From contig VJWM01000239.1 in assembly GCA_010909165.1 (NCBI GenBank), positions 62,001 through 126,000 of the forward strand: DNA of 64,000 nt, written 5' to 3'. The position numbers were made by a program, and so were the translations under genes. Position 1 is the stretch's first letter, and each line of letters begins with the position of its first letter. This document shows, one piece after another, positions 13,635 to 62,472 of this stretch. The notes below the pieces were generated by a model that searched no databases, was not told the origin of the DNA, and saw only the letters and a list, made by a program, of their open reading frames with translations. Source of the DNA: Anthoceros angustus (Eukaryota > Plantae > Anthocerotophyta).

Positions 13635-15490
13635 AGGTCGGTGCCTCCCAGCCCGGAGCGGGACATTCTGGAGATCGTGGAGAGGTCGGAGCTGAAGGCG
13701 TCCTCCAGGCGGTCGCCCTTCCGGCGGCGGCAGGGGGATGACAACGCCGAGCCCAGCTACACCTGCTTTCCGGCTCTAGGCCGACGCAGGCACACGGCCA
13801 AGTCCTTTCTCCACGGGCCGGGGATGAATTCGAATTCCTCTCCCATGGCCAGGGATGTGGGTGTTGTGGAAGCCGAGGTGAAGACGACGGACCCGACCCA
13901 GACTGCTTCAGCTTCTGCGCCCAGGCAGGACCAGGGATCGAGGGGAGCAGCAGCTTCGAGAACGCTTTATCACGCGGATCCAGTTTCTGGGGGTGAGATT
14001 ACCCCGCATGTTGCAATGTCGGAGTCTGAGAAGGATGCGCTTCTCGCCTGCGAGGAAGCTCTGGCCCTCCTCAACCTCCTTCCGCTGGGAGATGACGACA
14101 GGCAGCTGATCATGGCGATTACGAATCGGGGCATAGCCATCTCCTGGTTCCTCCGGACTGAAGCCCGGATCAGCATCAAGCTCAACGCGCTCAGGTTGGT
14201 GAGGAACTTGGTGGGTTTGAGGGAGCTGGCGGGCCTGATTGGATCACGGCACGCCACATTCGTCAGGCTGCTGCGGTTTGTGAGGCACGATTTGCACCCG
14301 GAAGGGCTGAAGCTGGTGCTAGAAATCCTGCTCTTGATCTGCGGGTCCGGGGCTGCGCAGATGAAGAGGGGAGTCGACGCCGGGGCGGTGGAGTCTCTTC
14401 TCAGCTTCCTGGAAGCCCAGGTGGACGGCAGGCTGGATCGGTCTCCAATTATCGACAACAGGCTGCCGTCTCCCAAGCCAGATCCGTGCCGGCCTCGGAC
14501 TGCTCTTGACAGTCCGACGTCCTCCGGGCACTCCCTTCAGTATGTTGACAGAAATGTGCAGGCCGCCATAGCCCATCTCCTGAAGGAGGATGCGGAGCGA
14601 GGAGCAGCACCTCTACCTGCGTCACGGAACTGCAGGCTGAACAAGGAGCTGGCGCTGCGCGTTGTGGACAAGCTGGTGGGCAAGGACCCGGACAGGTTGG
14701 CTATTGTGGCCAAATGCAAGGCAGGAATTCCGACCCTTGTTCGGCACATGGGCAAGATTTCACCCCAGGCGACAGAGATCTGTGCTTCCATTCTGCGGGC
14801 TCTGTGTGGGCTGGAAAGCACGGACACTGCAACCACATACGATGTAGAAGTAGCAAGACGGGCTGCAATTCAAGCTGGTGTCATCGATCAACTTGTGTTT
14901 GTTGTGCAGAGTGGTTGCACAGCAAAAACTCGCCAGTCTGCTGCCCAATTGCTCAGAATCTTGAATTGGAAGCACAATTCGGGGAGTCCCTCCTGAGCGA
15001 AGCTTCTCGACCTCACTCGCATTTTTATTTCCCAGGACAGTATTTGCAGTCGTTGGCACGTTCATTAACCAAACCCGACAAGTTTAACGTACTCCCAGCC
15101 CTTCATCAGCAGCTCGTACAAAGCTACATGCTTAAGGTGTCTGGGAGATCCAAGCCGTTCGGTGTAGAATGCATATGCGTGACCTATTCTTTCATTTTAA
15201 TTTTCTTACGAGTTCCAAAGACCAAGGTCTTTTAAAGTAACGACACTGATCAAACAAGGTAAAAAAGTCTTTAAAGTAAGACACTGATCAAATAAGGTAA
15301 AAAAGTTAAAAGTTAGCAGATATAAAAAGCTAAGTTAGTAGTTGCCTTGTTGAGAAGATGCATGTGTTGCACGCTTATGCAATCTCCTATTAAAGAGGAA
15401 GTGCTATAGCCACTTATGAAACCTGCCTAGAGAGGACTCTTAGTGATCAGTGGTTTGTAAGAATTCCTAGATTTAGCAGCTACTTAGTTG
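13635..15490 (+). repeat. tandem direct duplication (~1.85 kb) of 11783-13634: 3' half of the U-box gene plus 3' flank
   Basis: Near-identical sequence. Both junctions share AGGTCGG (11783, 13635, 15491). This copy keeps an open frame to the stop at 14996 but has no U-box or start codon. Confidence 0.95.
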
Positions 15491-36119: not shown

Positions 36120-39100
36120 CAGTGAGGTCAAGGAAAGTGGTTAGTGAATTGATCAAAATCCACGCCACCCTTGACTCACACGGATGTACATTTCTGGTCG
36201 ACTGTAGGGCCAGTGCTTTTTCTTTTGTCTTAAAACTTTGCTGCATAGAGGTGCTTGCCGACAGGAACCGAGTGCGGGCCCCATCTACTTCTCAGCAAGC
36301 AAAGAAGCAGTGCATACATCTCTCCTTAGTAGACAAACTCCTCTACAAATTAAAGGGCAATCAGAATTCGGATCATCCAGCTGGGGGGAGGTTTCGATGG
36401 CATTCTTGGAGTAGCACCTTCCCTGTCAACATGGCAAAAGTTTTGCGTACATGTAGTACCTCAGCCCTATTGTATGTCATTAAGGAGGCATCTCCTTTTG
36501 CAGACAGCATCAATGCTGACCCTGACTTGCAGAGGTTGTTGGATGAGCATGCTGACGTTATAGTGACCGAACCTCCTCCTGGTTTCCCTCCACATTGTAC
36601 AGGGTCATTGAACATGCTGTAAAAGTGCGAGATGAAGCAGCCAAGCCACCAAACAGGCCCACCTTCAAGACGTCACCAGAGAGATTGACGAATCAAAAGG
36701 ATAAGTTGAGGAACCGCTAGCAAATGGGTATATCCGTCCTTCAAAATCTCCATATGGTGCCCCTATTACTTTTGCTAAGAAGAAGGATGGGAGTTGACGT
36801 ATGTGCATCGACTTTTGAGGGCTGTAAAATAGTACCAAGCACAACAGTTTTCCATTACCAAGAACGGATGAGATGTTGGAGAAGTTGTCCGGGGCACAAT
36901 ATTTTTCAAAGCTCAACTTAGCTGCAGGCTACCATCAAATTAGGCCAAAACAGAAGACGTCGAAAAAACAGCTTTCAACTCGAGATATGGCAATTATGAG
37001 TGTCTGGTCATGCCTTTTAGCATGATCAATGCCCCTCCAACTTTTCAGAGCTTGATGAATGAGGTCTTTGCCGACCTTCTGGACAAGGGGTACTCATCTA
37101 TATGGACGATATTCTCGTGTACAGTAGAACACAGGAGGAACACTTGCGTGTCTGAAGAGAAGTTCTGGCTAGACTCACGAAACAACAGCTGTATGTGAGG
37201 AAAAGCAAATGTAAATTCCTCACTCATAGCATAGAATACCTTGGCCAGATTGTGTCAAGGGAGGGTAACACTATGGACCCAGGCAAGGTAGAGAGCATCC
37301 ATTGGTGGCCGAAACCCACCAATGTGACGGAGGTGCAATCGTTCTTGGGGCCCAGCCTCCTATTATAGGACGTTTGTGCATCAATTTGGACACATTACAG
37401 CTCCGTTACCTGAGCTGTTGAAGGGAGATGATAGGTGGGCGTGGGGGTCTACGCATGGTCGAGCTTTTGAGCTGATAAAACAAAAACTTACCTCAGCAGC
37501 CGTGATTATTCATCCAGACCCCGACAAGGAATTTGTGGTCGCAACGGATGCCTCTGACTGCACAGTTGGAGCAGACTTACAACAAGGTTTGGGAAATGGT
37601 CTTCAGCCTGTCGCTTTACTTAGTAAGAAACTTAAACACGTAGAGCTGAATTACGCCACACACAAGAAAGAAGCCCTTGCTCAAGTCCTGGTATTACGCC
37701 ATTGGAGATGCTTTTTAGAAGGGCCTCTCTCTGTGCTTCAGACAGATCACAGCCCTCTTAGATACCTTCACACCCAGCCCTTGCTGTCCCGCAAACAGGC
37801 CAGATGGCTGGAATTCTTCCAGCAATTTCACTTCAAGGTTTTCTACAAAAAAGGGGAAGAAACCAAAGTAGCAGATGCTCTTAGTCGACAACCATGTATC
37901 AGACAGGAGCGTTTACAAACCTTTGCAATACTCACAGAAGCAGTAATACAACCTGAACGGAAACGGGAAGTAGAAGAGGCCTTACAGGTTGATGATTCAT
38001 GAAGCAAGGGTGATCAAAAGAACCATGGAGCTCCCAAATCCTGAATCAAACTGGATATTGCAGGACCGCCTGCTGTGGTTCAAAGGACGTCTGTATATTC
38101 CAGCCCTGCCACACAATAGATTGGCTCTTATCAAAGAAGCTCATGAAACTACCTCGGCCGGCCACACAGGCATAGATGAGACTCTGGCAGCTATTCAACT
38201 CCCGTATTACGGGCCCGGACTCAGATGACACGTTATGGATTTTGTTCAGCAATGCGATACCTGTCTACGTATCAAGCATGAAACTAAAGCACCCTCTGGA
38301 CTCCTACAACCTATACCCACACCTTTACAGCCTTGGGAAGTAGTACACATGGATCTCATTACGGGCTTGCCCCGCACAGCAGCTGGCTATGATGCCATTC
38401 TTACGGTCATTGCTAGAATAACAAAAATGGTTCATTTCATCCCTACCACCCAGACCTGTTCAGCTCAAACTGTTGCAGACCTATATCTCAGACATGTATA
38501 TAAACACCATGGTTTACCTCGTGCCATTGTATCCGACCGAGACCTTAGGTTCCTTTCCCATTTCTGGCAGTCCCTACACAAGGGACTAGGCACTCGGCTG
38601 CAATTCTCAACTGCCTAGTCTGATGGCTTAGCAGAAAAGGCAAACCAGACTGTGGAAACCATGTTGAGGGCCTTTTCCACAGACAGTAGCTAGAATGGGA
38701 GACATTCATTCATCTGGCCGAGTTTGCCTGCAATAATGCCCGCCATTCCTCCACCAAGCAGACACCCTTTTTCCTTAATCATGCCCATCACCCCCGCTTT
38801 GTTTTCTATGCCCCGTTCCTTGCAGTCAACACACCAACAGCTGAAAATTTTCTCCTGGAACATGCACAGGCTTTGAAACAGGCCAGGCAATTTGCGGTGG
38901 AATCGCAGAATCGACAGAAACAGGCAGCAGGTCAGCATCGAAATCAAGACAGCTTCGCCCCTGGTGATCTCGTCCTCCTTTCCTCCCGACATATTCCTCT
39001 CAAAGATGGCGTGCTGAGATTATCCGACCGATGGCTAGGTCCCTTCCGTGTACTGGCAGCGGTCAACCCAGTAGCCTACAGGCTCCAACTTCCTTCACAG

Positions 39101-41434: not shown

Positions 41435-44050
41435 GTACATTGGGAGGGAAAAACTCAACAGGCTACAAGAAAGAATCACACGATCAAAAGCACACGTTGT
41501 TGTTCTTGCTAAATGGAAACATCTGGCAAATGGTGACAGCCGCAGGCTCCTGAAACTGGTCTTGCTGGTACAAAGCTCTCACAGGCACCTGCTCATGGAC
41601 ATCGAGATTCAGCCACATGCGGATACTGCAGAATGCACAAACTCCAAGAGGCATGCCAGGAAAATTTTGAAGCAGTAGTAACATGCTGAAGAGGAGAGAA
41701 GGCAAGGATACGAAGCGTGAACGATTGAGACGGTGGTTAAGGCAGTTACGTCGCAGGCAAGCACTGCAAACCCTACGACGGGACCTGCTACATTTCAATG
41801 ACCGAAGCAATACCCAAAAGGTGTGAGCGATGAAAGGTCACCTCTCGGAACCATCAACGTTGCTTACCCACATGGAGGGAAGCAATATTACAGACCAGAA
41901 GGATCAAACAATAGTGACCTCTTGAATAAGAACCGACGTCTGAAGCTAGCGAAGAAGAAGAAACGTGTTTAGTGGACTACAAAATGTGCATCCCTAGTAC
42001 CTGTTTTGAAACACCACCTGTCTCACAATGACACTGCGGGTGCTGCATCGGATAATGGAAGTTCTACATTGCATTGTGATCGATGGAGAGTGGGTGCGAG
42101 AGGATGCACACATACAACACAGTGAAGTACCGGAAATTGCAACCAAAAACCATTCCGATCTGTCCCCACCCGAAGAGGAGGCAGACACAACTGGTACAGT
42201 GCGTTCACCACCTCTAATAGTTGGGGTATGCCCCAAGGAAAGCTCCCAGATCACCAATACATCATGTTGATTCATCCTGGCAGGCAAACAGGAAGACGCA
42301 CAACGCGAAGCAGCGGAGAGCGCACCTTGAGCAATCAGCTTGCGGGCGCGGCTGCAGACTCTAAGGGAATGGAAAGCTCAGACGCCGCAGCCGCCTTCCT
42401 GACAGCCACTTTAGCAGCCCTGATTTCCGTGACAAGGAACGCCTTGGTTTTGCTCACCGGCGCGCATTTCACCAGCGTCACTGTATCGCCCACCTTGCAG
42501 CTGTTGTATGGGTCGTGAGCCTGGTACTTTTTGCTGGTTTTGATCCGCTTCTTGTACTTGGGATGCGGCGCAATCCTGAACACCTCCACCGCCACGGTTT
42601 TGTCATTGGTTGCGCAAACCACCTTGCCCTGCACCTTCTTCATAGCCTCCACCTGCAGGCTGAATCCTGGCATGAGTGCCGGCCTCGCAACGCTGCTGCT
42701 ACTGCACGCCAGGTTTCCGCCCTGGAAAAAAGTGGAGGAGGATAGCTTGACCGGGGCAGCCAGCGGCTTCATTGCGACGGATGCAGCGGCCATAGCCGAT
42801 AGCGCCATTGCAGTCGCTGTTGCTATTGCTGCTCCACGGCGTGCTGACGGGACGAAGGGCTAGGAGTTTTGTGACCTTACGCATGAGAGAGAAAAACTGC
42901 TTGCCTGTCGCTGATGACTGGATTAACAGAAAAAGAAGATGCTCAATGAGCAGCTGCAGCTGGTTCTTGTGGTGGCCTTGCTTCAACTGCAATTGCTGGT
43001 GGTTGTTGGCTTTCTAGTCTTCTTCATCTTCTTCAGACAGTTTGTGGATGTGTTTGTGAATCTGGCACCTGGTATGGCCAGATACTTCCCGGTTTCCACA
43101 GCCTTCCTCATGTCATTCTTCAGCTGCGTTTACTGACCAGGATTACTCTAAACCGTCTTCATCAGTGGTGTCGCACGTTTGGAGAATCGGGGAAATTGGG
43201 CGCCATTTTCCCTTTCGAGCGCCGCCGGCTGCTGGCTTTGTAGCTCCATCCCAGTAGTTGAGAAGCTCCTGGGCGATGTAGTTTGCTGTGGTGAAAATCT
43301 CAGCGGTGCCGCGGCTATGGGGGACTGGGTGCTGGCGAGAATTTCACCCTCTTTGTCAGCTCGGAATGAGGTGCCCAGCACGTCGTACTGGCAGGACAGA
43401 GCAGCTGGCGGGAGGAACGCAAGAGGTACTACTGCAAATGGGTGTGGGTGCGGTGTCCGCCGGGTAACCATCAGGAATGCAAGGCATGCAGGTAAAATCG
43501 GCAGATGCAATATTGTCCTGCGGAGATCGTGTCCACAGACATGGGAAGGCTTGCAGGCGCTGGGCGGCGGAGGACGTGGATTTGAGCGGCTTCCTGGTTG
43601 TCGTCAGAGGATGGATGCAGTCCTTGCACTGGGACAGCAGCCAGGATCGTCGAGCCCGGGGGATCCCAACTTGGCTGCTGCAATCCTTCATTCCATTGGC
43701 AAAAAGCTCAGCCAGCTGGGTGGGAGTGCTGGCTTTGGCAAGGAACGCAATCCGGCTCTTTGCTTGACCTCTTTTATCGTAGCTGATGGAGGTATCGGTG
43801 GTGGGGATCATGGTAGGGGTAGGGGCGGCGGCGGTGACGGGGGCAATGGGGAGGACGGGTTTGAGAATGAGGATGGAAGGCATGCAATATCAGGTCTACT
43901 GGCCACATTCGGATTCCTGCTGGCAAGCAGACAGGGTTTAAGGCCATGGGTTTTGTGTTTGTCGGCGGCCTCTCTTGGATTCTTCTTGTCAGGTAGTATG
44001 GTGTGGGGAGGTTGTTATGATCTTGCCCTGGCCCTGACAGCTTCCTCTTT
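41435..44050. repeat. left arm of a ~2.6-kb inverted segmental duplication (partner ~51430-53930)
   Basis: For example ggctacaagaaagaatcac at 41461 matches the reverse complement of gtgattctttcttgtagcc near 53890. Continuous diverged homology runs through RPS17 and the RUS1 5' region. Boundaries approximate. Confidence 0.9.
42335..42808 (-). CDS. RPS17: plastid 30S ribosomal protein S17, copy 1
   Basis: Ala/Ser-rich transit peptide, then MKKVQGKVVCATNDKTVAVEV...HPKYKKRIKTSKKYQAHD...CKVGDTVTLVKCAPVSKTKAF (uS17 signature). Confidence 0.95.
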   Translation of the reverse strand: MALSAMAAASVAMKPLAAPVKLSSSTFFQGGNLACSSSSVARPALMPGFSLQVEAMKKVQGKVVCATNDKTVAVEVFRIAPHPKYKKRIKTSKKYQAHDPYNSCKVGDTVTLVKCAPVSKTKAFLVTEIRAAKVAVRKAAAASELSIPLESAAAPAS

Positions 44051-46452
44051 CTCTAAGCCCCGTCGACTGGCTGATGGAACTAGTGGCAGTGAGAACGGTG
44101 ATGATGTGTCTAGTCCTCAGACTGAGAGGAATTTGGTCGGAGCAATTTGGGAGGTCCAGGGAAGCAAGTGGAGAAGGTTTGTCCTGGATTTGAAGAAAGA
44201 CGATTTTGCACTAGATGTTGTGAAGCCCAACGAAACTGAAGCCGAATCCTATGAGCTCGCTTGCCAAGAGGACAGAGATCATGAACTCGTGAAAGGTGGC
44301 ATTGACAGGGAGTATGCAATGTTGACGTCCCGAATGGCGGACGAGGCTGAAAAATGTGAGTCAGAAGGGTCACCAGTTCATGATTCGGGTTTGCAGACTC
44401 CAAATGGTTTCAACACCCTAGTCCCTCCAGTAGGGGAAGATGAGCTACGGAAGTCTGATATTAACAATGCTGTGGAACAAGTTCGTGACCAAATAGAAGA
44501 ATATAGCTCAAGAATAGAGAGGACTCAGCCTGGCGTGGAGAGCTTGGAAAGGCGGTTTAAGGATGTGGTTGGACGCTGTGGGGCTCTTGTTAAGCAAATA
44601 ATGCTGCCAGAAGGCTATCCCAGAAGTGTAACAGATGACTACACAGAATTCACACTGTGGAGGATGGGACAGATTATTGCCAGTCAAATAAGTGGTGTGC
44701 TCACTACACAGGTTAGATGTCTATAGCCGTACTGTGCTAACTGCAGGGCCGAAGGAGAATGGTTGTTGTGGTTCCTGTGTCGTGCTCTTCTGCAAGTGGA
44801 GATGTTTGTGAGGACAACTACATGATTAATCAGCTCTTGTTGCCGCAGGCTTTGTTATATGCCATAGGTCTAGGGAAAGGTGCCATTCCCACTGCAGCAG
44901 CAATTAATTGGGTTCTCAGGGATGGCATTGGCTACTTGAGCAAAATTATGCTTTCCAAATATGGTCGTCACTTCGATGTCCATCCTAAAGGGTGGAGAAT
45001 GCTATCAGACTTGCTAGAGAATGCTTCATACGGCCTGGAGCTTCTGACTCCAGTATTTCCTCATCTTTTTGTTTACTTGGGAGCAGCGGCAGGAGCTGGA
45101 CGATCTGCATCGGGTATGATCCAGGTCAGGCCTATCAGTCAGAGTCCCTTCTCCTGCACCTATGATGGTTGGCCTACTGCTGTAAGAAGCAGCTTACCGA
45201 TGGTGTGCGGGTGTTGTGATGTTGCCTACAGGCTGCAACCAAGAGTTGCTTTAATGCAGGATTTGCTGCTCAGAGGAACTTCGCAGAGGTTTGCAAATTC
45301 TACTCCTGTGCTTTACTACGTTGCAAAGCTCTCGTGAAGGTATAGCCCATGGATGTTGTAGTAACCTTTGTGAGCTCCTGTGGTGCGCCAGTTGGTGGCT
45401 AAGGGTGAAGCTCAAGGGATGGTCAGCAAATCCATGGGCATCGCGTTAGGAATAGCTATTTCTGGCCACGTCGGCTCTTCTGGTCCTCGGCTCCTGGCAA
45501 CTTTTGCTGTCGTAACTGCTTTGCACATGTTCTTCAACCTGAAGTCTTATCAGGCCGTCCAGCTTCGAACTTTGAATCCTTACCGTGGCAGTAAGGCATT
45601 GTCTATTTGTTCATAGGCTCTCTTCAGTTCGTTTCTTGACTCGTTCAGTATTTGTTGCTGAGACTCTGTTTGCTCCGTGCTGTTCTACAGGCTTGGTTCT
45701 GTCTGAGTATCTAAGGAGTGGCTCAGTACCATCTGTGCGAGAGGTCAATGCTGAAGAACCCATTTTTCCTAGGATTGGTGTTCTGCACTTGCGTCTAAAG
45801 GGACAGCAGGTGAGGTATTCATTGCGCCCACCCCGTCCGACAGTTTGCACGTGAAAACACAGCTGGAGCCTGTAAGCATGCCTGTTGACAACCATGTTCT
45901 GTTTCCGTCCGTATAGGAAGGACTCAATACCTTGTCAGAGAGCAGCAAAAGAGATGCAGAAAGCATTGATCATAACCTAGAGCTGGGTTCGATGTTGGGG
46001 TCCTTGATCCACACACGAGAAGAAGCAGAAGCACTTCTACCCCTTTATGAAAAGGAGGCGTACATGCTTGCCAGGCGAGGGGATCGACTGCTGGTGAGTC
46101 TAGGTGATGTCTCCAGCTGTTGCTGATGTTCTTGATTGGTCAGTCTGTGGCCAACTCTTGCGTGCGTATCGTCCAGGTGGTACTGAAGAAATCGGTGACT
46201 CCAAGGGACATGCTGCGAGCCTTATTTCAAGTCACAATCATGTACAACCTACAAAATCAAAATAGGTTTGCGGCAGGGACAATTCCGGGGGATTGTGTGA
46301 AAGGTGGTGTGCTCGAGGTCTCTCACAGGATCATGGTAGAGGAGTTCCAAAGAATGCAACAAAATCTGAGTGCCGTTGGGTGGGTAAGTGAAGGGCTGGT
46401 TGCAAGGCCTTCACCTAACAGGCTTCTGACGGTGGCTATGAAAGGTGAATAG
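43317..46452 (+). CDS. RUS1: ROOT UVB SENSITIVE 1 (DUF647 family); start either ATG 43317 or ATG 43611
   Basis: Multi-exon. Gly-rich N-terminus, [29 protein letters not shown]...[11 protein letters not shown] / [50 protein letters not shown] / [12 protein letters not shown]...[16 protein letters not shown] / [11 protein letters not shown]. Stop at 46452. Confidence 0.92.
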
Positions 46453-48350: not shown

Positions 48351-51300
48351 ATATTTATGTAATTAACAATAACAATAAAGAGTTAACCATTATGTATACG
48401 CTTATCCTCTATAGAAGCAGCGGCTGTTTGAAAATTTTATATGTGGCCTTCTGCAGTGTTCAGATGTAAGCGTTCTTCGGATTTATCGCTAAGCTAGGTC
48501 TCCAGAAGTTTGTGAGTCTCAAATGTTTGAAGACAGGCATGGAAATAACAGAGGATACCTACATCAAAAACATTTGGATTGCTAGAAAGACTATGAAGTG
48601 GTGTGCAAACAATGGATACGAGGAACCAAAAAGCGTCTAGCTTAGAGGAAGCATTTAGATGCGTGAAGATGTTGGTGAGAAAATCTTCAATCAATGACAT
48701 AGATTATTATCCTGAGGTGGCAGTACAGGAGGACGTAAATAATGAAGACATGGATGTTGAGGTACATGAAGAACACGAACAATCGGATAAAGACTTTAGT
48801 AATGAAGAAAATGTAGGTATTAAGGCTGATGAGCAATTGGAGGAAGACTTGAATATCGAAGAGGGTTTTCCAATTCATGAAGACTTAAATGATGAAGTAG
48901 ACCTGGACCAAGACTTAAGTAATGAAGAAGATATTGATGAAGACTTAAATAATGAAGAAGATTTTGAAGAAGACTTTAGAGATTGAAGCACGAAAAGAAG
49001 ACTTTATTATAAAAAAGAGATGGAAAAAACCCATTCACCCCAAAAACAAAGGGGGAAAAACCCAACGAAGGGTACCATGAAAGGGGGACTAACCCGTACG
49101 TCTTTGCTCACTAGGTACTTGTCCATACGCTCATAACACAAATGAGATGATTGCTTCTAGCCATAAATTGACCTTTTCAGCTTGCAAACAAGATTCTCAA
49201 TATATTGGACAGCCGTATGGTATTTATATGTAGATATCTTCAATGAGTTCACCATTTAGTTATGCAATCTTCACATCAAGATACTAAATTTCGAAGTCAT
49301 GGATTGCTCCAAGAATAAGCGTATGATGATAATAGGGAGGCTCTTATGAAGATTAAATCCGAGGCCTTAGACTTTGAAGAGGCTAAGAGCGACATGGACT
49401 CCGAGGAGTCCGAGTGGGAGAAGGCTACCGAAGAGGAGGTAGCACAACAAGGAGGGACAGGGGCGGCTAGGGAAGCCCCTATGAGAGGAGCACTTACCCT
49501 TGAAGGGTGAGGAAAGTAGGTGTTAGCACCGGTAGATGACCTACCTGGCACCGTAGGTGGAGGACCTACTGGCATAAGTGAGGTACCTACCGTGGTAGGT
49601 GACCTACCCTACCGAAGTAGGTTAGTCGAAGATGGCAGCAAATAAAGGGGCTGCCAAGGAAAGTGAGGCGGTGGGGGAAGCCAATGCTTCTCCCCTTACA
49701 GAGGAAGCAAGGCCAGGGGTTGCTGCCCCTAGTGGAGAGGCGAGAAGACTAGGGGATGCCCATCCTATGACGGGGGACGAGGGAGCAAGAGGGTCACTTG
49801 TCCCCCAAGTAAGGAAAAGGGGCGAGACAGGAAATTAGCCTGTGGCCAAGAGGGCACGAGCCATCCTTCTAGAAGAGGGGCAGCCACCTGTCTAGCAAGG
49901 TGAAGAGGGTTCTTGTTCATGACCCATAGATTTGGCTTAGAGTTGTAAGCATGATGTCACTTGAGGAAGTCTCTTCTTAGGGGAAGGAAAGCATAAATGC
50001 TCATTGAATGGACAGCTGTGAATAGAATTGTAGGATAGCATCTTTCCTTGCTTCCGCCAAGCTTCTCGGAAAGTCTTCAACACCAGATACAAAAGCATGC
50101 TCCACTTCTGTACTGGCAAAGTTATCTAAGAACTACTTTGGAACATGATGCCTTGAGCTACACCTTAAATCACCAGACTCGTTCTGGCTGGCAGAGATTG
50201 ATGTAGCAAATCTTGGAGTTGCTTAACGCAAGCAAGCTCAAGATTTGTACTAGAGTCCCGCTATTAATATTAGGCGACTTAAGACAACTAGGAGTACCTA
50301 ACTATCTCATAACTCGAGTGGTGGAATCACGAGCTAAACACTATGACGGGGCTCGTTGCGTCGATGCCCAGTCACGGTCTTGATTCGTTCTTCGGATATT
50401 ACCTGAGTTATCCTAATGTACAGATATTAGAATATATCTCCAGAGATATTCTAATTCTTATCTATCTATTTATCTTGAATTGCTTAATTATTGTGGCAAT
50501 AGGCCAACAAGTTACAAGTCGACTTCATCAGGCAACATCTTGGCCTCAGGTTCCCTAACGGATACAAGGTTATTCCAAGACCGAAACACTATCGCTAGCA
50601 TAGTAGACATGCCACCCCTGCCAATCAACTTCCTCTTACAAGCCAACAAGGTTCTGAGCAATTAGCAACAACGTCACTTGCACCACACCTTTTTCTCCGC
50701 TATGCTACTAAACACCCCAAGCACCACCCCCTTCCTCATTTCTTGTCACGCCCCTTGACTGCCACCCGCTACTATGTTTTCCTATAGATGCTAGATTGAC
50801 GTGACAAATGCCCTATTCAGACTAGGTCACACAGTCTGCAAAACCCAACCAAATGATCATGCAAGCTAATCCGAAATTCCAAGAGAAGTTACCCGTTTTT
50901 GTATTTGAAGGTGTTTATGCCTTTCATTATAACACTCCTTAGAATAGCTTAGGGTGAAATGATGTAGCATGAAAGGCAAGGGGTGGTGGTCCTTCTTCCT
51001 TCTTCCTAGCTTTCTGAAATCTTGACACACTCGTACCTTTCCTTTTGAGTGCGCTGGACTCCCTGGAGCAAGTCTTAAATCTAAATGACAAGCCCTCAAA
51101 GCCGACCTGAAAAATTGTGTTTTTACCCAACCCAGAACAACACTCACGTACCTCATGGAACGGTTCGGTAGAAAATATTTAACGATTAAAATCTATAATC
51201 TTTTAGGATCCAAGTGTCGAACTTACCAAGAGGGCTAGTTGCCGAAACCAAGAGAAAATGGGGCGCAGGATCTGGAGGGGTGTCGCTGAAGTGCAGTCCG

Positions 51301-52250: not shown

Positions 52251-52528
52251 GTATCTGGCCAGACCAGGCGCCAGATTCGTAAACACGCCCACAGACTATC
52301 TGAAGAAGGTGAATAAGACGAGGAAGCCAACAACCACCAGCAATTGCAGTTTCGACAAGGCCACCACGAGAACCAGCTGCAGCTGCTCATTGAGCACCGT
52401 CTCATTCTGATTATCCTGTCATCAGACACCGGCAAGCAGGTTTTCTCTCTCATGCACAAAATCGCATGACCTTCAACCCTTCGTTTCGGCAGCACACAGC
52501 GGAGCAGCAGCAGCACCCAGCGACAGCA

Positions 52529-53002
52529 ATGGCGCTCTCCGGGATGGCCACTGCAGCTGTCGTAATGAAGCCGGTGGCTGCCCCGATCAAGCCATCCTCG
52601 TCCACATTTTTCCAGGGCGGAAAGCTGGCGTGCAGTAGCAGCAGCGTTGCGAGGCCGGCACTCATGGCAGGATTCAGTCTGCAGGTGGAGGCTATGAAGA
52701 AAGTGCAAGGCAAGGTGGTTTGCGCAACCAATGACAAAACCGTGGCGGTGGAGGTCTTCAGGATTGCCCCGCATCCCAAGTACAAGAAACGGATCAAAAC
52801 CAGCAAAAAGTACCAGGCTCACGACCCATACAACAGCTGCAAGGTGGGCGATACAGTGACGCTGGTGAAATGCGCGCCGGTGAGCAAAACCAAGGCTTTC
52901 CTTGTCACAGAAATCAGGGCGGCTAAGGTAGCTGTCAGGAAGGCGGCTGCCGCGTCTGAGCTTTCCATTCCCTTAGAGTCTGCAGTCGCACCTCCAAGCT
53001 GA
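52529..53002 (+). CDS. RPS17: plastid 30S ribosomal protein S17, copy 2
   Basis: Intact ORF from ATG 52529. The uS17 core is identical in amino acids to copy 1; differences lie in the transit peptide and last residues. Confidence 0.93.
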   Translation: MALSGMATAAVVMKPVAAPIKPSSSTFFQGGKLACSSSSVARPALMAGFSLQVEAMKKVQGKVVCATNDKTVAVEVFRIAPHPKYKKRIKTSKKYQAHDPYNSCKVGDTVTLVKCAPVSKTKAFLVTEIRAAKVAVRKAAAASELSIPLESAVAPPS

Positions 53003-55601
53003 TTGCTCAAGGTGCGCTCTCCGCTACGTTCAGTTGTATGTTTTCCTGTTTTCCTGCCAGGATGAATCAGCATGATTGTTTGTGTCATTCTCCAACTATA
53101 GGAGGTGATGAACATACTGTACCTTTTTTCTGTGCCTCCTCGTCGCATTGGGAGAGAGTGGGATGGGCTTCGTTTGCAAGTTCCGGTACTTTACTGTTTT
53201 GTATGTGTGCATCTTCTCTCACCCACTCTCCGTCGATCGCAACGCAATGTAGAACTTCCATTATCCAATGCAGCACCCGCAGTGTCATTGTGAGACGGAC
53301 TGGTGCTGTTTCTGGATCAAAAAAAGTAGGGGTGCACTTTCACTAATCCATTAGAGAGGATCCTTCTTCTTCGCTCGCTGCAAACGTTGCTTCTTCTTCA
53401 AGAGGTCACTGTAGTTAAATCCTTCTGGTCACTCACACTGCTTTCCCCACATGTGGGTAAGTACAGCACCGTAGATAGTTCCTACAGGTGACCTTTCATC
53501 GCTCACACCTTTTGGGTAGTGCAAAGGCCTCGGTCATTGAAATGTAGCAGGTCCAGCCCTAGGGTTTGCAGTGGTTGCCTGAGATGTAACTGCCCTAACC
53601 ACCTTCTCATTGTTTGACGCCTCTTATCTGTGCTTTCTCTCTTCTTTATGGTGTGTTACTGTCGTCTCACATTTTCGCTGGCATGCCTGTTGGAGATTTG
53701 TGTAATCTGCAATATCGCAGGTGCCTGAATTTTGATGTCTATGAGCAGGTGCATGTGAGGCTTTCTACCAGCAAGACGAGCTTCAAGGGCTTGCGGCTGT
53801 GACCTTTCGCCACGTGTAGAGGTTAGTATGAGATGTTCCAGTTTAGCAACAACTAGCATAAGAGGACCAAATGTGTGCTTCTAATCTTGTGATTCTTTCT
53901 TGTAGCCCGTTAGATAGTTGTCTCTCAATGGGTCTGTAAATTCTAGCTCATTAACCCCTCTTGCCGTCTCTAATTGTGGTCATCCAGTCCCTGATAACAG
54001 TGACAACTGGGAGCCCAAATTTCTGCCCATTTAGGTGGACTAGTTTTGGCAGGCTACCTGCGGTCTGTTTCTCTTTATCCAGCCATGATGTCAGCTATCC
54101 TTCTAAATGCCTATGGGGTGTTTTTCTTCTCCTATAATTTGATCTGCAGGATCTTTTTCCCTTTGCTTTTTCCACCGGCTCCAAACCTCTTCTAATTTCA
54201 CTGGCTGAGCTAGCGGATGTGGTATCGAGGACATTTCTCTTATTTGGGCCCGCAACCTTCGTTTAGTGATGCACAACATATGTGCAATGCTGCTAAATGT
54301 GGTGTGAACCGTCTACTGCATGGCTTGTGTGAACTCGGAAAGCTTGCCTACTTCTCCTAGCAGGTTTGTCAGAAATGCGGGTTTCAAGACCACGCGGTTG
54401 TTTGGTCAAACTGAGAGCTATTTTATGAGTCACTCTGAATTTATGATTTGGAGTCTCACTAGATGAGGACCCTTGAGTCCTGAGGATATGCTTAGAAGGC
54501 AGAAGAATCTGGCTGATTTTAGCCCGTTATTTCTTCTAGGCAGGGAGATTTTGTGATTGAGAAGTAATCGAAGACTTGTTTGACCGTCCAGGAAGCGCGT
54601 ACTTCTACACGGTTGGCACACACGGGGCGGGGAAAAATTGATAAGCGGACTTTCATGAACATCGACGTCCACTAGACAGCTCGCTGTCGACTGGTGGAAA
54701 AGTTGGGACAACTCAGTTACCAACATTTTAGGTCGAAAATTTTTGGTACAGATTTGTTTCTTCCCACGTGGGTCTGGTGGAAAGTGGGTCCTGCAGATGC
54801 TTGTGATGGACGCTGGCAGTGCCTGTAAAGCTGATTTTTGCGTGAGTGGTATGACGGTGGGTGGGCCAAGCTGGAAACACCTTCCAATCGCCTTTAGGGT
54901 GTAGGCCATACACTGAAAAGCTTGGGCTTGGCTGTCCTTGCTTGGGGCCAACTACACCTGATCTAAACAGCAACAGATTCCAAGGTTGTACGAAAGCGCG
55001 TATACCACAGCGCGAAACCTCGAAGCAGGAGTATCTGGACCTACCGCTGTCATGATTCTGCAGACCAAAATCTGCTACTCACTCACCTTTGAGTATCCAA
55101 ATGGTGCTCGGTGGAGCAGCAGTTTGACCTCGATCTTCCACATGATGCCCAACAGGACGAGGAGGGGATAAGTGGTAACATGGTCACCTTCCACAGTGAA
55201 GTACCTGGACCACCCACTCCTGCCCCTCCCCGCCCCCGGCCCCGAAGATCCCTGTTCTGGTTGAGGCCAGTTCATTCCCTGTTCGTACTTTCATCGATAG
55301 CACCTGGAAAGGCACGCATAAAGGTGAATATTCTGAACAGGCAGCACGGCTCGCCTGGACGTATGAACTTTCCAAGGCAAGGAACAGTGTGAAGGCCTTT
55401 TCACGGTACTGGACAGGCCATTAAGAAACTGTGAGGTCGCTCCCGCAGACTCAGAGTACAGATTGACAAGAAGATCCGGAGGGTCCCATCCCATCCCATC
55501 TAATCGCCTCAAGCAACAGTGCCACAACAAAGCAGATCAGGTTCCCCAGCCTCCCTTCCTCCCCACCCCATGAACATGCTCCTGCCACGGAGTGATCAAT
55601 C

Positions 55602-56771
55602 ATGAGCCTCCCAGTGAAAGACCTGAGGCAAAGAGCAGCCGCAGTGTGCGCTACCTACATCGAAGAATCACTCCTGACCTGTGCCGACGAGTACGTCGCC
55701 ACATGGGTGCCCCTCACATACCGAGCCAAGATGGCATGCTACGTCCTGCAATGGTACCGCGCAGTGCCGCTCAAGGGCATCATCCTAGGCCAGGCTCCGT
55801 CCAGCCTGGACAGCCCTAACACCTCCTTCCCGGACACCGGGCCCATACCCCTGTCCGCAGCCTTCTCCTACAACGAGGACGCCCTCGCATGCAAGCGGCA
55901 GGGCGTGGTCGTCCCACCCCTGGCCACAGACCTCCTGGCCCAGGAGATCGGCAAAACCTGCGCCGTGGACGAGGAGGCGGTGCTCACGTCCCTCCGGGAC
56001 TGCCACACCCTCCTAGACCAGGGCGTCATCGTCTGGTACGCCCTCCCCCTCGGGAAGCAGGAGATCCGCTACAACAACTACTCGGAAGACGCCTTCCGGC
56101 TCAAGCACAACTCCCGGCAGATCCAAACCCTAGCTCACGCCCTGCACCAGCTCATCTCCATCAGCAACCAGATGGAGCCGAGCGCGCTGGAATCCACCAC
56201 CGTGGTGGCCCTCGGGGTGTGGGCCAGGAGGGTGTCTGCGGCCATCCGGGCCAAGGTCTCGGATCAGTCCGCAGAGCTCACCCGGCGTCTGGACATCAAG
56301 GACGAGGCGGTGGCCCCAGGCCCGTGCCAGTCCCAGGGCCGGGGGCGAACCCGCGAGGGTTTCCTCCCCATCGCGCCTCCCGCCGAGCTGCGGGCCATCC
56401 ACGCCCTGCTCAATTTCCCTCGCCAGCACTGCTCTCCCAGCTCCATGTCCCCTGTGCCAGAACGTCGGAGCCCCAACTCCGTTAGGTTTGTGGACAAGCA
56501 CCTCCGGGACATGCTGCGCATGGACGACGCAGTCTCCTGCTCTAGCCACGACGCTGCCGTCAAGCCGGGGAAGCCGAGGTTGCGGCTGGACTTGGATGTC
56601 TCTCGGGCAGAGGACGATGAATCGAGGCAGGAGGAAGTGGTGGCGGAAACACCAGCTACATTTGGAGCTTTCACACGAGCAAGATACACCGTTAAGGAGA
56701 AGGGTAAAGCGATTATGATAGACGAGCCCGAGGCCTATGCTCCTTCAACAAGTGACTCTGATGACGATTGA
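55602..56771 (+). CDS. intronless orphan protein with a degenerate family-1 uracil-DNA glycosylase-like motif series
   Basis: 389-aa GC-rich ORF. LKGIILGQAP ~ VKVVILGQDP, AAFSY ~ GLAFSV, VVPPL ~ IPPSL, LDQGVIVW ~ ARQGVLLL, TVVALGVWAR ~ VVFLLWGSHA, in the correct order. No HPSP motif. Confidence 0.6.
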   Translation: MSLPVKDLRQRAAAVCATYIEESLLTCADEYVATWVPLTYRAKMACYVLQWYRAVPLKGIILGQAPSSLDSPNTSFPDTGPIPLSAAFSYNEDALACKRQGVVVPPLATDLLAQEIGKTCAVDEEAVLTSLRDCHTLLDQGVIVWYALPLGKQEIRYNNYSEDAFRLKHNSRQIQTLAHALHQLISISNQMEPSALESTTVVALGVWARRVSAAIRAKVSDQSAELTRRLDIKDEAVAPGPCQSQGRGRTREGFLPIAPPAELRAIHALLNFPRQHCSPSSMSPVPERRSPNSVRFVDKHLRDMLRMDDAVSCSSHDAAVKPGKPRLRLDLDVSRAEDDESRQEEVVAETPATFGAFTRARYTVKEKGKAIMIDEPEAYAPSTSDSDDD

Positions 56772-57379
56772 CAAAAACAAAACCAAGGCCTTCCGTTCGC
56801 TGCCTGGCTCATAGCTAGTAGGTACATGCCATAAAGGTGTCTATTTGCTATGGTGACCCTATTTGTCTTCAAAAGATGCCCAAGAACTGTACTTTGTGAG
56901 ATTTAAAGCTTTCAACTACGAGTACACAAACCAACTTTATCGCAGAGTTAAAAGAGTTGGATAGATTATAAGTGAATACAATAAGACCAATTTAGGTTTA
57001 TATGCTTCTATTTTCTAATGTGATAGATACACACCAAGAAATGAACAAACAAAAATTTTAAAAGAGGGAGAGATTGATCAAAAAACTTGTGTGATACATT
57101 TAGTTCTTGACATAGTGAAGAAGAAGAAGAAGAAGAAGAAGAGTCTACTCTAGCCTAGTGAGTGTTGGGTTTTGTTTCCTACATTGAGAAATTGAAGAAT
57201 GATAGTATAGATAAATTTATTTAAATGTGGTACACCACAAAAGAAAATATAGAATTTTGATTTTGAGTTTTACCACTTAATGTATACTTGCACGTCTATG
57301 TGAAATAATATTGATGAAGTGTTTGTGTTTGTATATGTTTGTAAGATTTGTATAGCAAGCATAGATAAATTCATTAAGA

Positions 57380-58927
57380 ATGGCTACAACGGGCGGTTCT
57401 GGAGTGGCCTTGGACAAAGCCTTACCAGCAACTAGGCTACTAGAAAAAAGACGTCTCATGTTCCAAATTCAAGAGGCCTTAGAAGCACAAAAAGTTGAAT
57501 TTGCAGCGTAAGAAAATATATTCATTTATTTGTACTATAAGATGCATCAATTTTGCTTTCGCTTGCTAATGTTTGTATTTCTTGGTTGGACAAATAGCAA
57601 GGAAGAGATACTTAAAAAACGTGAAGAATCTTTGAGGTTGAAAGACCTTGAGTTACAAGAGTCTTTAATTGGCTTCTCAAAATTTTTACAGGTTACCACC
57701 TCATAGGAATTAAAACTAATGACTGCTTCAAAATCATGTAGTTATATTGAAAAGAGAAATATTTTTTTTTCTATTGACTCTTGTAGGAAAATGGGATAAA
57801 AAAAGCAAGAGCAGAAAAGAAAGCTGCTGATGAAATGAGAATACGGATCGATAAGGTCGATGTTCAATGTTGTGAACTACATTATAATATCGAAATCCTA
57901 TTTGCTTAGCATTGAATTTAAGTTAATTTTGTACTAATTCCAATACATATTCTATGAAGGAAGCAGAAATCCGGCAATTAGAAGACACTCATGCTGCAAC
58001 CCAACGCAAAAAGACTAGCATCACTAAGGAATTAGTAAGAATTTTGCCCTACAATAAATATTTGGAGACTGTGGTGGACTACGGTGGGCAATATCACGAG
58101 ATAAATGATCTCCTTGTAAGGTATAGTTTTCCAATTTCATGTGCACAAAGAGGTAGTCTGAAAATAAATTGGCAATATCTATTTGGTAATGGGATCATTT
58201 TTGTGGGGCTAGATATCAAACTTTAGCTGCTACAAATAAAGACTTGAAAATGCATATTGAGGATTGTGGTATCATGATAGAAAAGATAAGAGCCGACATG
58301 CAAAACTATACCAAGACTAGCAACAACCAAATGCTTACCTTGAATAACGATATAAGTATAACAAAACAAATATATCAAAAGAAAAGACGGGAAACATCTG
58401 ATATTCAATTGCGTATGGATTCCATTCTCCACCTAGCTGCTCAAAGAACGCTTGCACGTAGTCAGGTAAATATAAGATTTTTTAAATATTTTCAAACTAA
58501 AAAATACGTTAATAAAATATCATTTACTCTCAAACACTTGAGTTAAGTGGAGCAATGTTAAGTGGAACAGATTTGGACTTAGTATACATCTTATCGCTCT
58601 TTGAGGTGTTTAATATGAAAACAAAATGTTAGATACCATACATCTCAGTTTCTTTATAAATTGTTGTTAATTGTTTTGCAGGTATGTTTGGCAGCAGAAT
58701 ACCTTTTCAACCGCATATGTTTGAACTCTAGTGTGAAACACTATCCTCATACGAATCCACTAAATCAATTATCCGCAGCAGCAGACTATATATCAGATCT
58801 CATTTTTACAATCAGACTCCATAGAGGTACACCAAACAAAAGGGAGATGATGTTGTTTGGCCGGTTTGGACGTAAGAACAAATTTCCAAAAGGTAGTGGG
58901 AAACCCAAGCAGAAAGTTCGATTCTAA
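57380..58927 (+). CDS. CFAP73: CFAP73/CCDC42-family (DUF4200) flagellar coiled-coil protein
   Basis: Six exons with GT-AG introns: PATRLLEKRRLMFQIQEALEAQKVEF / KEEILKKREESLRLKDLELQESLIGFSKFLQ / ENGIKKARAEKKAADE / ...PYNKYLETVV...YHEINDLLVR / YQTLAATNKDL...AAQRTL / VCLAAEYLFNR...NPLNQL. Confidence 0.85.
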
Positions 58928-59224: not shown

Positions 59225-60260
59225 CCGAGATATGGAGTACAAACCCTAAACCCCCAAGATCTAGAGTACAACCGTTCTCCGAGTCCAAAAGGAAGTCGTC
59301 ATCAATGCTGGGGACCGGGGGACGAAAAGAACTGCCACAATCACAAGCAAATGTGGACAAGAATATCACAGCCTGCAGAGTGTACTTCGTAGATCCACCA
59401 CACCTGTTTGGGAGTGATAAAAACTGCAGTAACAAAGCTCACGTCAAAAAGGTCAGTCCTGCTGTCCGAGAAGCCACGAAGCGCACTTTCCAGGCGCTGC
59501 AAGTTTTTGTGTGGCAACGATGCGTCCCACAAAACTGATTTGGTGCACAAATATCGACCTGCAATTCCGCTGCTGGAGCTCCAGCTGCGGGGAAAAGGTG
59601 GGACAAATGGGGAGCTGCAGAGAAAAGGTGGGACAGGATGGGAGCTGCATGGAAAAAGTGGGACAGAAGGAAGTCACGAACCGCATTTGAGTCCACAGAA
59701 TGACGCAGCGTAGAGCCCAGCATGGACCAATCTCCAGCCTGTCCGGATTCTATAGCAAACCCCAGGAATAACGGGCTGGCTGGCAAAGCCTTTTTGCGAT
59801 ATCTTCATATTAATGGATTGTTACCCGGCGGAAGACAAGGAAGGCTGTTGGGCGAACGGAATGCAGCCGACTCCGTCACTCCCCGTGCCAACGTGGGGTC
59901 GAATCCCAAAGAGGGTATCGCCTTCGATGGTTGCGTGTCTTTGCGTGGCAAATTTAAAGCATGCGATTCCACTTTCGGGCATCGTGTTTGCCTCCTAGGT
60001 GTCCCAGTTCACATTTAGCGATTCTGCTTGCCCTTCAATTTCTGATCCCCGTAATCCAGCTCGTAGAGGAGAGACCATGGCGCTGTGACGTGACATGCTC
60101 CTTGTGCTTGCTCGGCTGCTTGGAACAATGACCGCCATTAGGACAGGATTCGAGGAACGTGGTGCCATAACGATGGCTTGCCGGTGGTCTCCCTTGCACC
60201 GGACTTATGCATGTTCGGGAGACTAAACTCTCTTACGAAGTATGGTGCTGTCGCCTTTGG
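59225..60260. repeat. ~1-kb diverged direct repeat, copy 1 (partner ~61435-62420), unidentified
   Basis: Shared blocks include ttccaggcgc...tgtggcaacgatgcgtccca, gttacccggcgg, ccccgtgc..acgtggggtc, gcgattccacttt.gggcatcg, gtgacatg..ctccttgtgct and gtggtgccat.acgatggcttgc. Confidence 0.85.
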
Positions 60261-60351
60261 CCCGTGGATGAGGGACTTTTAACCAAAAAAAATGATTAGC
60301 ATTTTAATGAAAAGATTAATGAATGATCTTTTATCCACGAAGTTTTTATAA

Positions 60352-60970
60352 AGCGAGGCAAGAGGAGGTTGAGAGGCAAACAAAAGATCCATTCGAAGCA
60401 AATCCAACAGCTCCATTTAAGGCAAATCCCACGAGCAAGATATACGGTTAAGGAGGAGGGTAAAGCCATCATGGTAAAAGGGTCCATGGTCTATGCTCTT
60501 GCTGGTAAGGAGAAGGGTAAAGCCATCATGATAAAACAAGCCAAGGTCTATGCTCCTGCAACAAGTAACTCTTATGACAATTGACAAAAGATAAACAACA
60601 AGTAACTCTTATGACAATTGACAAAAGATAAAGCCCCTCTCTGCCTTGTCTGTCTAATTTATATATGCCATAAAAGTCTCTATTTGCTATGGGCATCTCA
60701 TTGTCTTCGAAAGAGACTGTGAAGACCTACATAGCTAAATAAATGTGAGATATTGAAGCTTTCAACAACAAGTACACAAACCACCTCTATTGTGGAACTA
60801 AACGAGGTGGATAGATCAAGATTTAGGTTTATGTACTTTCATTTTAATGTTGTAAATACATTCAAAGAAATGGACAAACAAGAATTCTAAGAAAAGAATG
60901 ATCAATCTAAAGCTTATGAAATAAGTTCAATTGCTAACATAATGAGTGTTGGGTTTTGTTCCATAGATTG
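60352..60970 (+). pseudogene. diverged copy of the C-terminal tail and 3' flank of the 55602-56771 ORF
   Basis: RARYTVKEEGKAIM...KEKGKAIMIKQAKVYAPATSNSYDN* matches RARYTVKEKGKAIMIDEPEAYAPSTSDSDDD*. The downstream ~400 bp is colinear with ~56770-57180. Confidence 0.85.
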
Positions 60971-61434
60971 ACAAATTGAATGGGTGGGTATGGCATGTAA
61001 AAAGTAGAAAAATACCCAAGAAAATTACAACATGAACCTAGTGTCTTTGATCATCATCATCCTTCTTTCATATAAAATATCAACACTAGAACATGAACCT
61101 ATTGTCTTTGATCATCATCATTCCTGTTTCATATAAAATATCAACACTAGAACATGAACCTATTGTCTTTGATCATCGTCATTCCTATTTCACATAAAAT
61201 ATCAACAAAAGATATGCAGTATTAAAAGAGCACACAATCTATAATAACTTTCCACAAGTAGGTCTCATCTCATGCAAATACATACATGTCATACAATTTC
61301 TATCATAAGAGAAGAGTAAGATCACAAGTTAAGATGATGATATTTTATCATGTAATATTTTAAAATATTAATGTCAATATTTTTTTTACGTATTATCATA
61401 ACATAATGGTGAACGCTGAGACTTCAAAAATATG

Positions 61435-62420
61435 CATATATGTATGGAAAACCTGATCCAAGATCTAAAATACAATTGGTTTGAAGACTCCAAAAAGAAA
61501 TCATGTGAGGACCGTAGGACAAAAAAATAGAACGACATAAATGATGGCTACAGTATGAGCCTGCATTGTGTACTTTCTCACACATAACAGTAACCAAGAT
61601 AACGTCAAAAAAGCCGCCCGTACTGCCCGGCAAGCCACAAATCGCACGTTCCAGGCGCCACAAACTTTTTGTGGCAACGATGCGTCCCAAGTGCCCAAAT
61701 CAGGCGTGCACTTCCGCTGCTGCAAGGGAAAAAGTGCAAAAGAAGGAAGTCGCGATCCACGATGAGTCCACAGAGCAATGCAGACTAGGGCCCAGCCTGG
61801 ACCAATCCCAGCGTTCGAATTCCATCAAGCCCATTCCGGGTATTGCCTTTCTGCAGCACATTGATTTAATGGAATGTTACCCGGCGGGAGACATGGAGGG
61901 CTGCTGGGCGAATGGAATGCGGGCGGCCCCGACAGTCCCCGTGCGAACGTGGGGTCTGAGCTCAAAGGGCACATTAGCATTGATGGATGCGTGTCGCTTT
62001 GCTTCCCATGGCGATTCCACTTTAGGGCATCGCATTTGCCCGCCAGGGACCTGTCCCACTGCACACTTGGCGCATTTGCTTGCCCTCCTAGTTCTGATCC
62101 CTGCAATCTCGCATCGCTCGACCCCTTGTGTTGCGAAAGCGTCACGTCTCTTTTTACTGCCGGCTCGTGGAGGAGAGCCCTTGGCGCAGTGACATGACCT
62201 GCTCCTTGTGCTCGCTGCACTGCTCGGAACCACGGCCGCCGGCAGGACGACGTCTCAATGTTAGGGTTCCAAGAATGTGGTGCCATGACGATGGCTTGCT
62301 GGTGATGTCTCCCTTGCACCGGAATTCCCTGCCCATGTACCAAGTGTCTTACCAGATGTGCGCGGCCAACAACCATCAAAGATACCGGAGAATCCGAATC
62401 CTTGATATGCGATACCTTCC
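61435..62420. repeat. ~1-kb diverged direct repeat, copy 2
   Basis: see 59225-60260. Confidence 0.85.
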
Positions 62421-62472
62421 TTGATTTCACAGCAGAGCAGAGGGGAGCTGGTCTGGTTTGGTGCAACATTGA

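Follow-up and report, generated by a model that had tools for sequence, protein, structure and literature searches.

The question raised by this stretch of Anthoceros angustus (Anthocerotophyta) DNA is whether a GC-rich reading frame that looks like a uracil-DNA glycosylase (UDG) with a degenerate active site is a genuine gene, what its product could do and where it came from. The open reading frame (ORF), here termed ORF389, lies at 55602..56771 on the + strand of the window, by which we mean the whole 64,000-nucleotide stretch analysed (positions 62,001 to 126,000 of contig VJWM01000239.1, assembly GCA_010909165.1), and runs in a single exon from an ATG through 389 codons and a stop. We find ORF389 to be a genuine single-exon gene, resident in the genome of a non-seed land plant, and a member of a compact, unnamed family outside the curated models, which has the UNG fold, is devoid of the family-1 catalytic Asp and represents a variant within the UDG superfamily. 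Among DNA-repair folds this superfamily is one of the most thoroughly studied, and members that occur naturally without catalysis are, to our knowledge, rare. Taken as a whole, the reading of ORF389 as a non-catalytic DNA- or partner-binding module, built on a UNG scaffold and carrying an acidic tail, is in our judgement reasonably probable; the binding role by itself, which is drawn by analogy, is a tentative proposal that we would place somewhat below an even chance.

ORF389 was judged to be a real gene because it is longer than any frame in shuffled sequence, because GC at its third codon positions (GC3) is far above that at its second positions (GC2), and because its N-terminus is common to its relatives. 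When the stretch was shuffled 2000 times by mononucleotide, no shuffle reached an open run of 389 codons; the mean was 143 and the maximum 328 codons. GC is 0.63 overall and 0.64/0.47/0.78 by codon position; over residues 1-281 GC3 is 0.85 and GC2 0.48, and over residues 282-389 GC3 is 0.62. The start codon aligns with those of relatives from Sphagnum and from two further contigs, L002 and L003. A first-pass annotation, made from the letters of this DNA, had described a 389-residue, single-exon, GC-rich ORF next to an AT-rich flank, and the values agree with that description (GC 0.62-0.66 within ORF389, 0.31-0.35 in the 2 kb downstream). GC-rich DNA does yield long chance ORFs, and the exact protein is without a record in the public gene collection, as might be expected of a frame that is not a gene or is foreign to this genome through contamination. 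Homologs reaching E 2e-25, together with the shuffles, rule out a chance ORF, and the stretch is contiguous, with plant genes on both sides of ORF389 and matching codon preferences. We therefore consider this explanation extremely improbable.

The relatives of ORF389 are few. An exhaustive phmmer search of 1.84 billion representatives, in which local alignment makes longer, shorter and fused relatives detectable, returned only five related clusters (E 2e-25 to 5e-4) and no match past residue 281. The first, P0001 (E 2e-25, 39% identity to ORF389), includes the Sphagnum balticum protein CAM6014924.1 along with copies from peat metagenomes; P0002 matched at E 1e-21, P0003 and P0004 are two neighbouring pieces of one contig, and P0005, a protein of 571 residues, matched at E 5e-4. 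Searching a word index of proteins with ORF389 gave no match, and exact look-ups of the product of a neighbouring S17 gene and of other proteins from the window, L002 and L003 likewise found no record. No family was recognised for ORF389 in Pfam (E up to 10), NCBIfam, PHROGs, PADLOC or PDB sequences, and ORF389 and its relatives gave only sub-threshold chance matches (Spectrin_Anc-1, TEX47, AIRS_C, Cas7b and unnamed phrogs). The protein had been called an orphan, which is apt in that no curated model recognises it, but it does have single-exon relatives in Sphagnum and on two plant-like contigs.

All plant members seen (the window copy, Sphagnum, L002 and L003) are intronless. In Sphagnum the gene is one unbroken ORF of 373 codons and adjoins a host UCR_14kD gene. 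The L002 contig (Logan run SRR33208241) is plant-like, with bromodomain and SAD_SRA genes, and its relative at 1559-2844 (+) is interrupted by one break: it is called as two pieces whose frames differ, and these were treated as individual rows and combined only for per-column counts. The ratio of non-synonymous to synonymous substitution rates (dN/dS), a check suggested with the original description, is 0.19-0.25 among three distinct Sphagnum sequences (14-18 synonymous and 12-13 non-synonymous changes), a pattern of constraint which indicates that the family gene is under purifying selection in that genus. GC3 is 0.47 in Sphagnum, 0.48 in L003, 0.32 in L002 and 0.78 in the window, in each case near the composition of the gene's own contig, as expected after long residence, and the family has probably been resident in plant genomes for a long time. 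The window showed no nucleotide similarity to L001-L003, and synteny with them was not detected.

A second, more distant clade is formed by unnamed P0005-like proteins of 570-613 residues, of which a profile search with alignment A1 added at least nine (578-613 residues; P0020-P0028). Profiles built only from plant members and only from P0005-like members aligned to each other in hhalign with a probability of 98.4% and E 5e-15 over 180 columns. At only about 20% identity between them, the two clades are, on this profile comparison, truly homologous. Of the core positions that are near-invariant across both clades, ORF389 keeps W35, Y47, W51, P56, I60, P66, A86, P106, A113, Q173, L181 and G205.

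The fold was modelled for ORF389 residues 1-266 using AlphaFold2 without templates and an 18-sequence alignment (A3), giving a predicted template-modelling score (pTM) of 0.74 and a mean predicted local distance difference test score (pLDDT) of 70.5. The model contains a UNG-like alpha/beta domain at residues 1-236 (55602..56309, +), with strands at 59-64, 142-147, 199-204 and 230-235 and flanking helices. When searched against the PDB with Foldseek, family-1 UNG occupied ranks 1-44 and 46-47 among the matches listed, with enzymes from human, cod, bacteria and herpesviruses, and Xenopus SMUG1 appeared at rank 50. In the P0005 model the N-terminal UNG-like domain is mostly at pLDDT 80-95. Long helices come after it, then about 140 residues of low confidence and, at the C-terminus, a helical domain modelled with confidence. 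In the same search all 40 matches listed for P0005 (ranks 1-49) were family-1 UNG (probability 0.98-1.00, best E 2.5e-4), and its template-modelling (TM) score to the target was 0.4-0.55 for PDB UNG matches. A UDG fold had been proposed from motifs, and family-1 UNG tops the PDB fold matches of both proteins.

Sequence comparison with UNG is far less decisive. As a comparator we used E. coli K-12 ung (L004) with 79 enterobacterial relatives, to which the family domain aligned colinearly in hhalign over 157 columns with the hallmark positions in register. Several results count against the assignment. This alignment is marginal (score about 20, P 0.04), given shuffled-column controls with a mean of 13.5, a standard deviation of 2.3 and a maximum of 21.5, and the full alignment A2 gave no hhalign match to the single E. 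coli Ung sequence. There is no Pfam UDG match for ORF389 at E up to 10 or for seven relatives at E up to 1, and neither the family profile nor the ORF389 protein finds a UNG among PDB sequences. The fold matches of the ORF389 model itself are weak, with E 0.026-0.36 (all above 0.001) and TM 0.2-0.4. The case for a UNG fold is instead made by the fold searches of two template-free models and the firm profile-profile link between the plant and P0005-like clades, and these support ORF389 being a very divergent protein with a predicted family-1 UNG fold. The same failure of every UDG sequence model at E up to 10 agrees with the earlier view that this is not the host UNG.

The state of the active site was read by taking E. 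coli Ung residues 64, 66, 77, 123, 187 and 191 from L004 and transferring them through two alignments. The five blocks that the first-pass annotation had named (ORF389 residues 57-66, 86-90, 103-107, 138-145 and 200-209) are all in the translation, and through the family and hhalign alignments they map to strands and loops of family-1 UNG. Strand 1 and the loop of the water-activating Asp (55770..55802, +) carry Ala65 at the position of Ung D64, and no Tyr follows; plant relatives have Ser here, and P0005-like proteins Ser (five) or Asn (five). At Ung Y66 all ten P0005-like sequences have Tyr, plant relatives have Ser or Thr, and the window copy has Ser67; the plant relatives also have a Tyr two residues past this column, which the window copy lacks. 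The second block (55857..55871, +) keeps an aromatic residue, Tyr90, equivalent to Ung F77 and to a column of Phe or Tyr in both clades. A Pro-Pro block (55908..55922, +) corresponds to the Pro-rich DNA-backbone loop of UNG, with P106 near-invariant in the family.

In strand 2 (56013..56042, +) the position of Ung N123 is occupied by Tyr146, with W145 adjacent; Asn is found there in 10/10 P0005-like sequences and in five plant rows, and Tyr in P0004. Strand 3 and the Gly that follows it (56196..56228, +) include G205, again near-invariant in the family. Strand 4 and the loop of the catalytic His and intercalating Leu (56289..56333, +) have Gly240 in place of Ung H187 and Ser244 in place of L191. 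Every other aligned member of both clades has His at the former position, and at the latter P0005-like proteins have Leu or Ile and plant relatives Thr. The His-Pro motif, kept in every relative aligned at this loop, is absent from ORF389, whose loop contains no His. Judged from these alignments, loss of the catalytic Asp is family-wide, and loss of Asn and His belongs to the window copy and, in part, its nearest relative. Only the stacking aromatic and the Pro-rich block remain among the UNG hallmarks of the window copy, and the degenerate catalysis claimed in the first-pass annotation is thus confirmed residue by residue. Beyond the domain, the C-terminal extension (residues 237-389; 56310..56768, +) begins with residues of low model confidence (237-260), shows weak family similarity up to about residue 281 and none thereafter, and is acidic, with an isoelectric point of 4.2 over its last 60 residues.

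ORF389 therefore resembles family-1 UNG (E. coli Ung, human UNG2) in its alpha/beta fold with four parallel strands, the order of its five blocks, the stacking aromatic and the Pro-rich block. It differs in being extended by about 55 residues at the N-terminus and by a 150-residue tail, in being intronless and undetected by sequence models, and in belonging to a family that lacks the catalytic Asp as a whole, with the window copy also without Asn, His and Leu. The residue map, combined with the behaviour of a human UNG2 double mutant altered at the equivalent Asp and His, which is catalytically inactive and still binds uracil-DNA (PMC4756853), suggests that the ORF389 protein would not excise uracil by the UNG mechanism. 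With Asn and Leu also gone, specific uracil recognition is doubtful and has probably been lost as well. If functional, ORF389 would most likely act without catalysis, as a DNA-binding or partner-binding module made up of the UNG scaffold and a long acidic C-terminal tail that is at least partly of low confidence. The earlier suggestion that the protein is kept as a DNA or nucleotide binder is plausible on these grounds.

An active DNA glycosylase with another catalytic arrangement, or directed at another damaged base, is a rival to the non-catalytic reading. It is an established point that other members of the superfamily, UDG families 2, 3 and 5 (MUG/TDG, SMUG1, UDGb), also dispense with the family-1 Asp and work with Asn or no polar residue at that position. 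The absence of Asp is then by itself no proof that the whole family is inactive, which weakens the non-catalytic reading. Activity is conceivable for the P0005-like relatives, half of which have Asn at this position and all of which keep Asn, His, Tyr and Leu/Ile at the others. ORF389 differs from families 2, 3 and 5 in that family 1 ranks far above them in its fold matches, and in that those families are active enzymes, whereas ORF389 is without the mapped polar residues. It has Ala in place of Asp, Tyr of Asn, Gly of His and Ser of Leu, all four at once, and the two loops show no evident polar residue that might stand in, making an active enzyme very unlikely for the window copy.

Two known systems offer partial parallels for a UNG scaffold used without chemistry. 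The engineered inactive human UNG2 sensor has lost the same two catalytic residues and binds uracil-DNA tightly (PMC4756853), but it is artificial and keeps the uracil-specific Asn and the intercalating Leu, both of which ORF389 lacks. It may serve as a model for how the Asp-less family members could act. As described in parts of the literature on vaccinia virus D4 and gammaherpesvirus UNG, the UNG fold can work as a replisome binding module independently of catalysis (PMC4450493, PMC5934625, bioRxiv 10.1101/2023.05.19.541466). These viral proteins provide a possible analogy for a useful non-catalytic UNG fold, although they are themselves catalytically competent. No specific relation of the ORF389 family to viral UNGs was seen in a fold search of BFVD, where the P0005 model matched a diverse set of viral UDGs, with 12-20% identity and E 1e-3 or weaker, none of them closer than cellular UNG.

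The main rival for the window copy is decay, namely that ORF389 is a dying gene whose active site has been lost and which stays open only since stops are rare at 63-66% GC. Much of what speaks for decay also tells against a retained binding module. Of the plant lineages the window copy has diverged furthest: it keeps 59% of the positions identical in the other three, the fewest of any, as compared with 69-90% for the others. It has lost Asn and His, though almost all relatives keep them, and chance ORFs of 139-198 residues occur in other frames across the same GC-rich stretch. The L002 relative is already broken by its one frame change, and the 3' part of ORF389 lies in a locally duplicated, degraded module, with a tail that cannot be aligned past about residue 281. 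This module (56547..57196, +) comprises the last 74 codons and about 430 bp of 3' flank; its degraded second copy, 3.8 kb downstream (60336..60980, +), is partial, without the UNG-like part, and retains 66-90% nucleotide identity in pieces and 33% identity to the ORF389 protein over residues 316-389, with small internal duplications. Decay alone sits poorly with a frame length that no shuffle reached, with the strong coding signature of the domain, with retention of the core fold positions near-invariant across both clades and with the pTM of the template-free model. We consider decay unlikely, if well worth keeping in view, and continue to favour a non-catalytic module.

The downstream copy of the module has further local structure. 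Within it, at 60427-60632, the short stretch encoding a Lys/Gly-rich peptide is tandemly duplicated, and a 37-nt unit across the stop codon occurs in two copies that are 100% identical. Directly upstream of the degraded copy lies a GC-rich stretch (59688-60191) that shares 79-85% identity, in several colinear pieces, with another at 61763-62309, some 2.05-2.1 kb away; neither has a Pfam match or a long ORF. No inverted, terminal or long terminal repeats bracket ORF389, its protein has no transposable-element domain, and the window contains no extra full copy. Capture of the whole gene by a transposable element is ruled out, as bracketing repeats are absent and only the 3' module is duplicated.

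The neighbourhood of ORF389 bears on its proposed foreign origin. Its gene content marks the window as plant nuclear DNA. At a distance of 2.6 kb upstream lies a host gene without introns (52466..53002, +), which encodes ribosomal protein S17 of plastid type (Pfam Ribosomal_S17 E 3e-25), and 1.2 kb downstream are AT-rich ORF pieces (57954..58546, +) with a DUF4200 match below the Pfam cut-off, probably belonging to a spliced host gene. Nothing viral was found in the ORFs scanned around ORF389 (54430-54951, 55111-55392, 57954-58546 and 61566-62469), and virus-hallmark genes do not cluster in the window, whose named ORFs are host genes (cyclin, PUB-ARM, RUS and S17) and one retrotransposon fragment. 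GC-richness was ruled out as a mark of foreign origin: the intronless host genes of the window (cyclin B, PUB-ARM and plastid S17) are also GC-rich (GC 0.57-0.60, GC3 0.64-0.68), and synonymous codon preference in ORF389 correlates with that of the window host genes at r=0.70. Since these genes are GC-rich too, the contrast between ORF389 and its AT-rich flank is the normal look of a gene in this genome. Gene composition in the window is two-sided, with intronless genes at GC 0.57-0.63 and GC3 0.64-0.78 and the DUF4200-like pieces at GC 0.31-0.38.

Together these data leave the candidate foreign or viral gene of the first-pass annotation unsupported at this locus, where neighbours and codon usage are those of the host and no viral relative was found. 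No close relative of ORF389 was present in INPHARED phages, BFVD, plasmid records or IMG/VR (the last scanned with a single protein), and the P0005-like proteins likewise gave no match in phage or plasmid records by tblastn and had no close BFVD counterpart. A recent viral or mobile insertion at the ORF389 locus has, at the very most, a slight chance of being correct.

An ancient exchange is a separate matter. On this account plants acquired the family in the deep past from a virus-like or mobile element, or such an element took it up from plants, and ORF389 would be a domesticated or leftover descendant of a viral UNG-like gene. The distribution is very narrow and patchy, as beyond the five clusters no relative came from mosses, liverworts, ferns or seed plants, of which the collection has many sequenced species, and the plant members seen all lack introns. 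The contigs that carry the other relatives reach 28-32 kb. Nine near-identical P0005-like proteins of 591 residues (P0023, P0030-P0037) belong to one 90% cluster and are encoded on contigs of 28,445-28,483 bp, a constancy at 28.4-28.5 kb that suggests a small complete replicon; contigs of four other P0005-like clusters extend to 29.8-32.3 kb, and for the remaining clusters only contigs of 4-7 kb are known. UNG-type genes are also common in large DNA viruses, including those named among the BFVD fold matches. Weighed against this are the host genes on either side, the lack of terminal repeats, the single full copy, the host-like codon usage and GC, the purifying selection in Sphagnum, and the missing relatives in phage, plasmid and IMG/VR collections. 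With clades only about 20% identical, any transfer, in either direction, must be ancient. We regard such an origin as unlikely, and a long-resident host gene remains our preferred account of ORF389.

A precedent for exchange is documented in an early land-plant genome, that of Physcomitrella patens, whose relics resembling nucleocytoplasmic large DNA viruses (Maumus et al. 2014) likewise include intronless UDG-type ORFs (PMC4083422). There the UDG ORFs, in 15 copies, cluster with virus core genes in blocks of 2-34 kb with repeat-like low GC (PMC4083422). ORF389, by comparison, is an isolated gene between host genes, shares their high GC and has one full copy in the window, and no P. patens protein was among its relatives in the phmmer search. 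A more elaborate scenario, in which an Asp-less UNG was exchanged between a virus-like replicon of about 28-32 kb and early land plants, then domesticated in a few lineages as a non-catalytic reader and further specialised in the window copy, is in our view distinctly improbable. Were it true, what the reader recognises would be uracil, an abasic site or a DNA end, with genome surveillance as one conceivable use, and the family would form a new natural pseudo-glycosylase branch of the UDG superfamily, common to plants and undescribed elements.

For annotation, ORF389 should be recorded as a real gene, and a UNG label is unwarranted. The family offers a natural series, from members that may bind lesions to a fully degenerate one, with which the use of the UNG scaffold without chemistry can be probed, and, being so patchily distributed, it is also a case on which the exchange of genes between small DNA elements and early land plants can be tested.

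A complete B-type cyclin (Cyclin_N and Cyclin_C) is encoded by one uninterrupted 454-codon ORF at 8226-9590 (+), and its best relatives, 45-62% identical, are from Diphasiastrum, Marchantia, Riccia, ferns and Sphagnum, so that the window comes from a non-seed land plant without a close relative in the protein collection. Plant cyclin B genes do not usually lack introns, and this copy may be a retrocopy. A PUB-type ARM protein is encoded by another intronless gene at 13632-14996, and a fragment of a long-terminal-repeat retrotransposon polymerase with reverse transcriptase and RNase H (37376-38002, +; RT_RNaseH E 2.5e-28) lies 17.6 kb upstream of ORF389. Two adjacent ORFs at 43179-44726 and 44759-45337 (both +) match successive parts of the UVB_sens_prot profile and are probably two exons of one host RUS/UVB_sens gene; the first 467 residues of the former have no family match. 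Tandem arrays are found at 48785-48979, where 30-nt units lie inside an acidic-repeat ORF (48603-48986), at 59583-59672, with three 30-nt units, and at 61021-61212, with three copies at a 61-nt period (reported as 70 nt each, overlapping).

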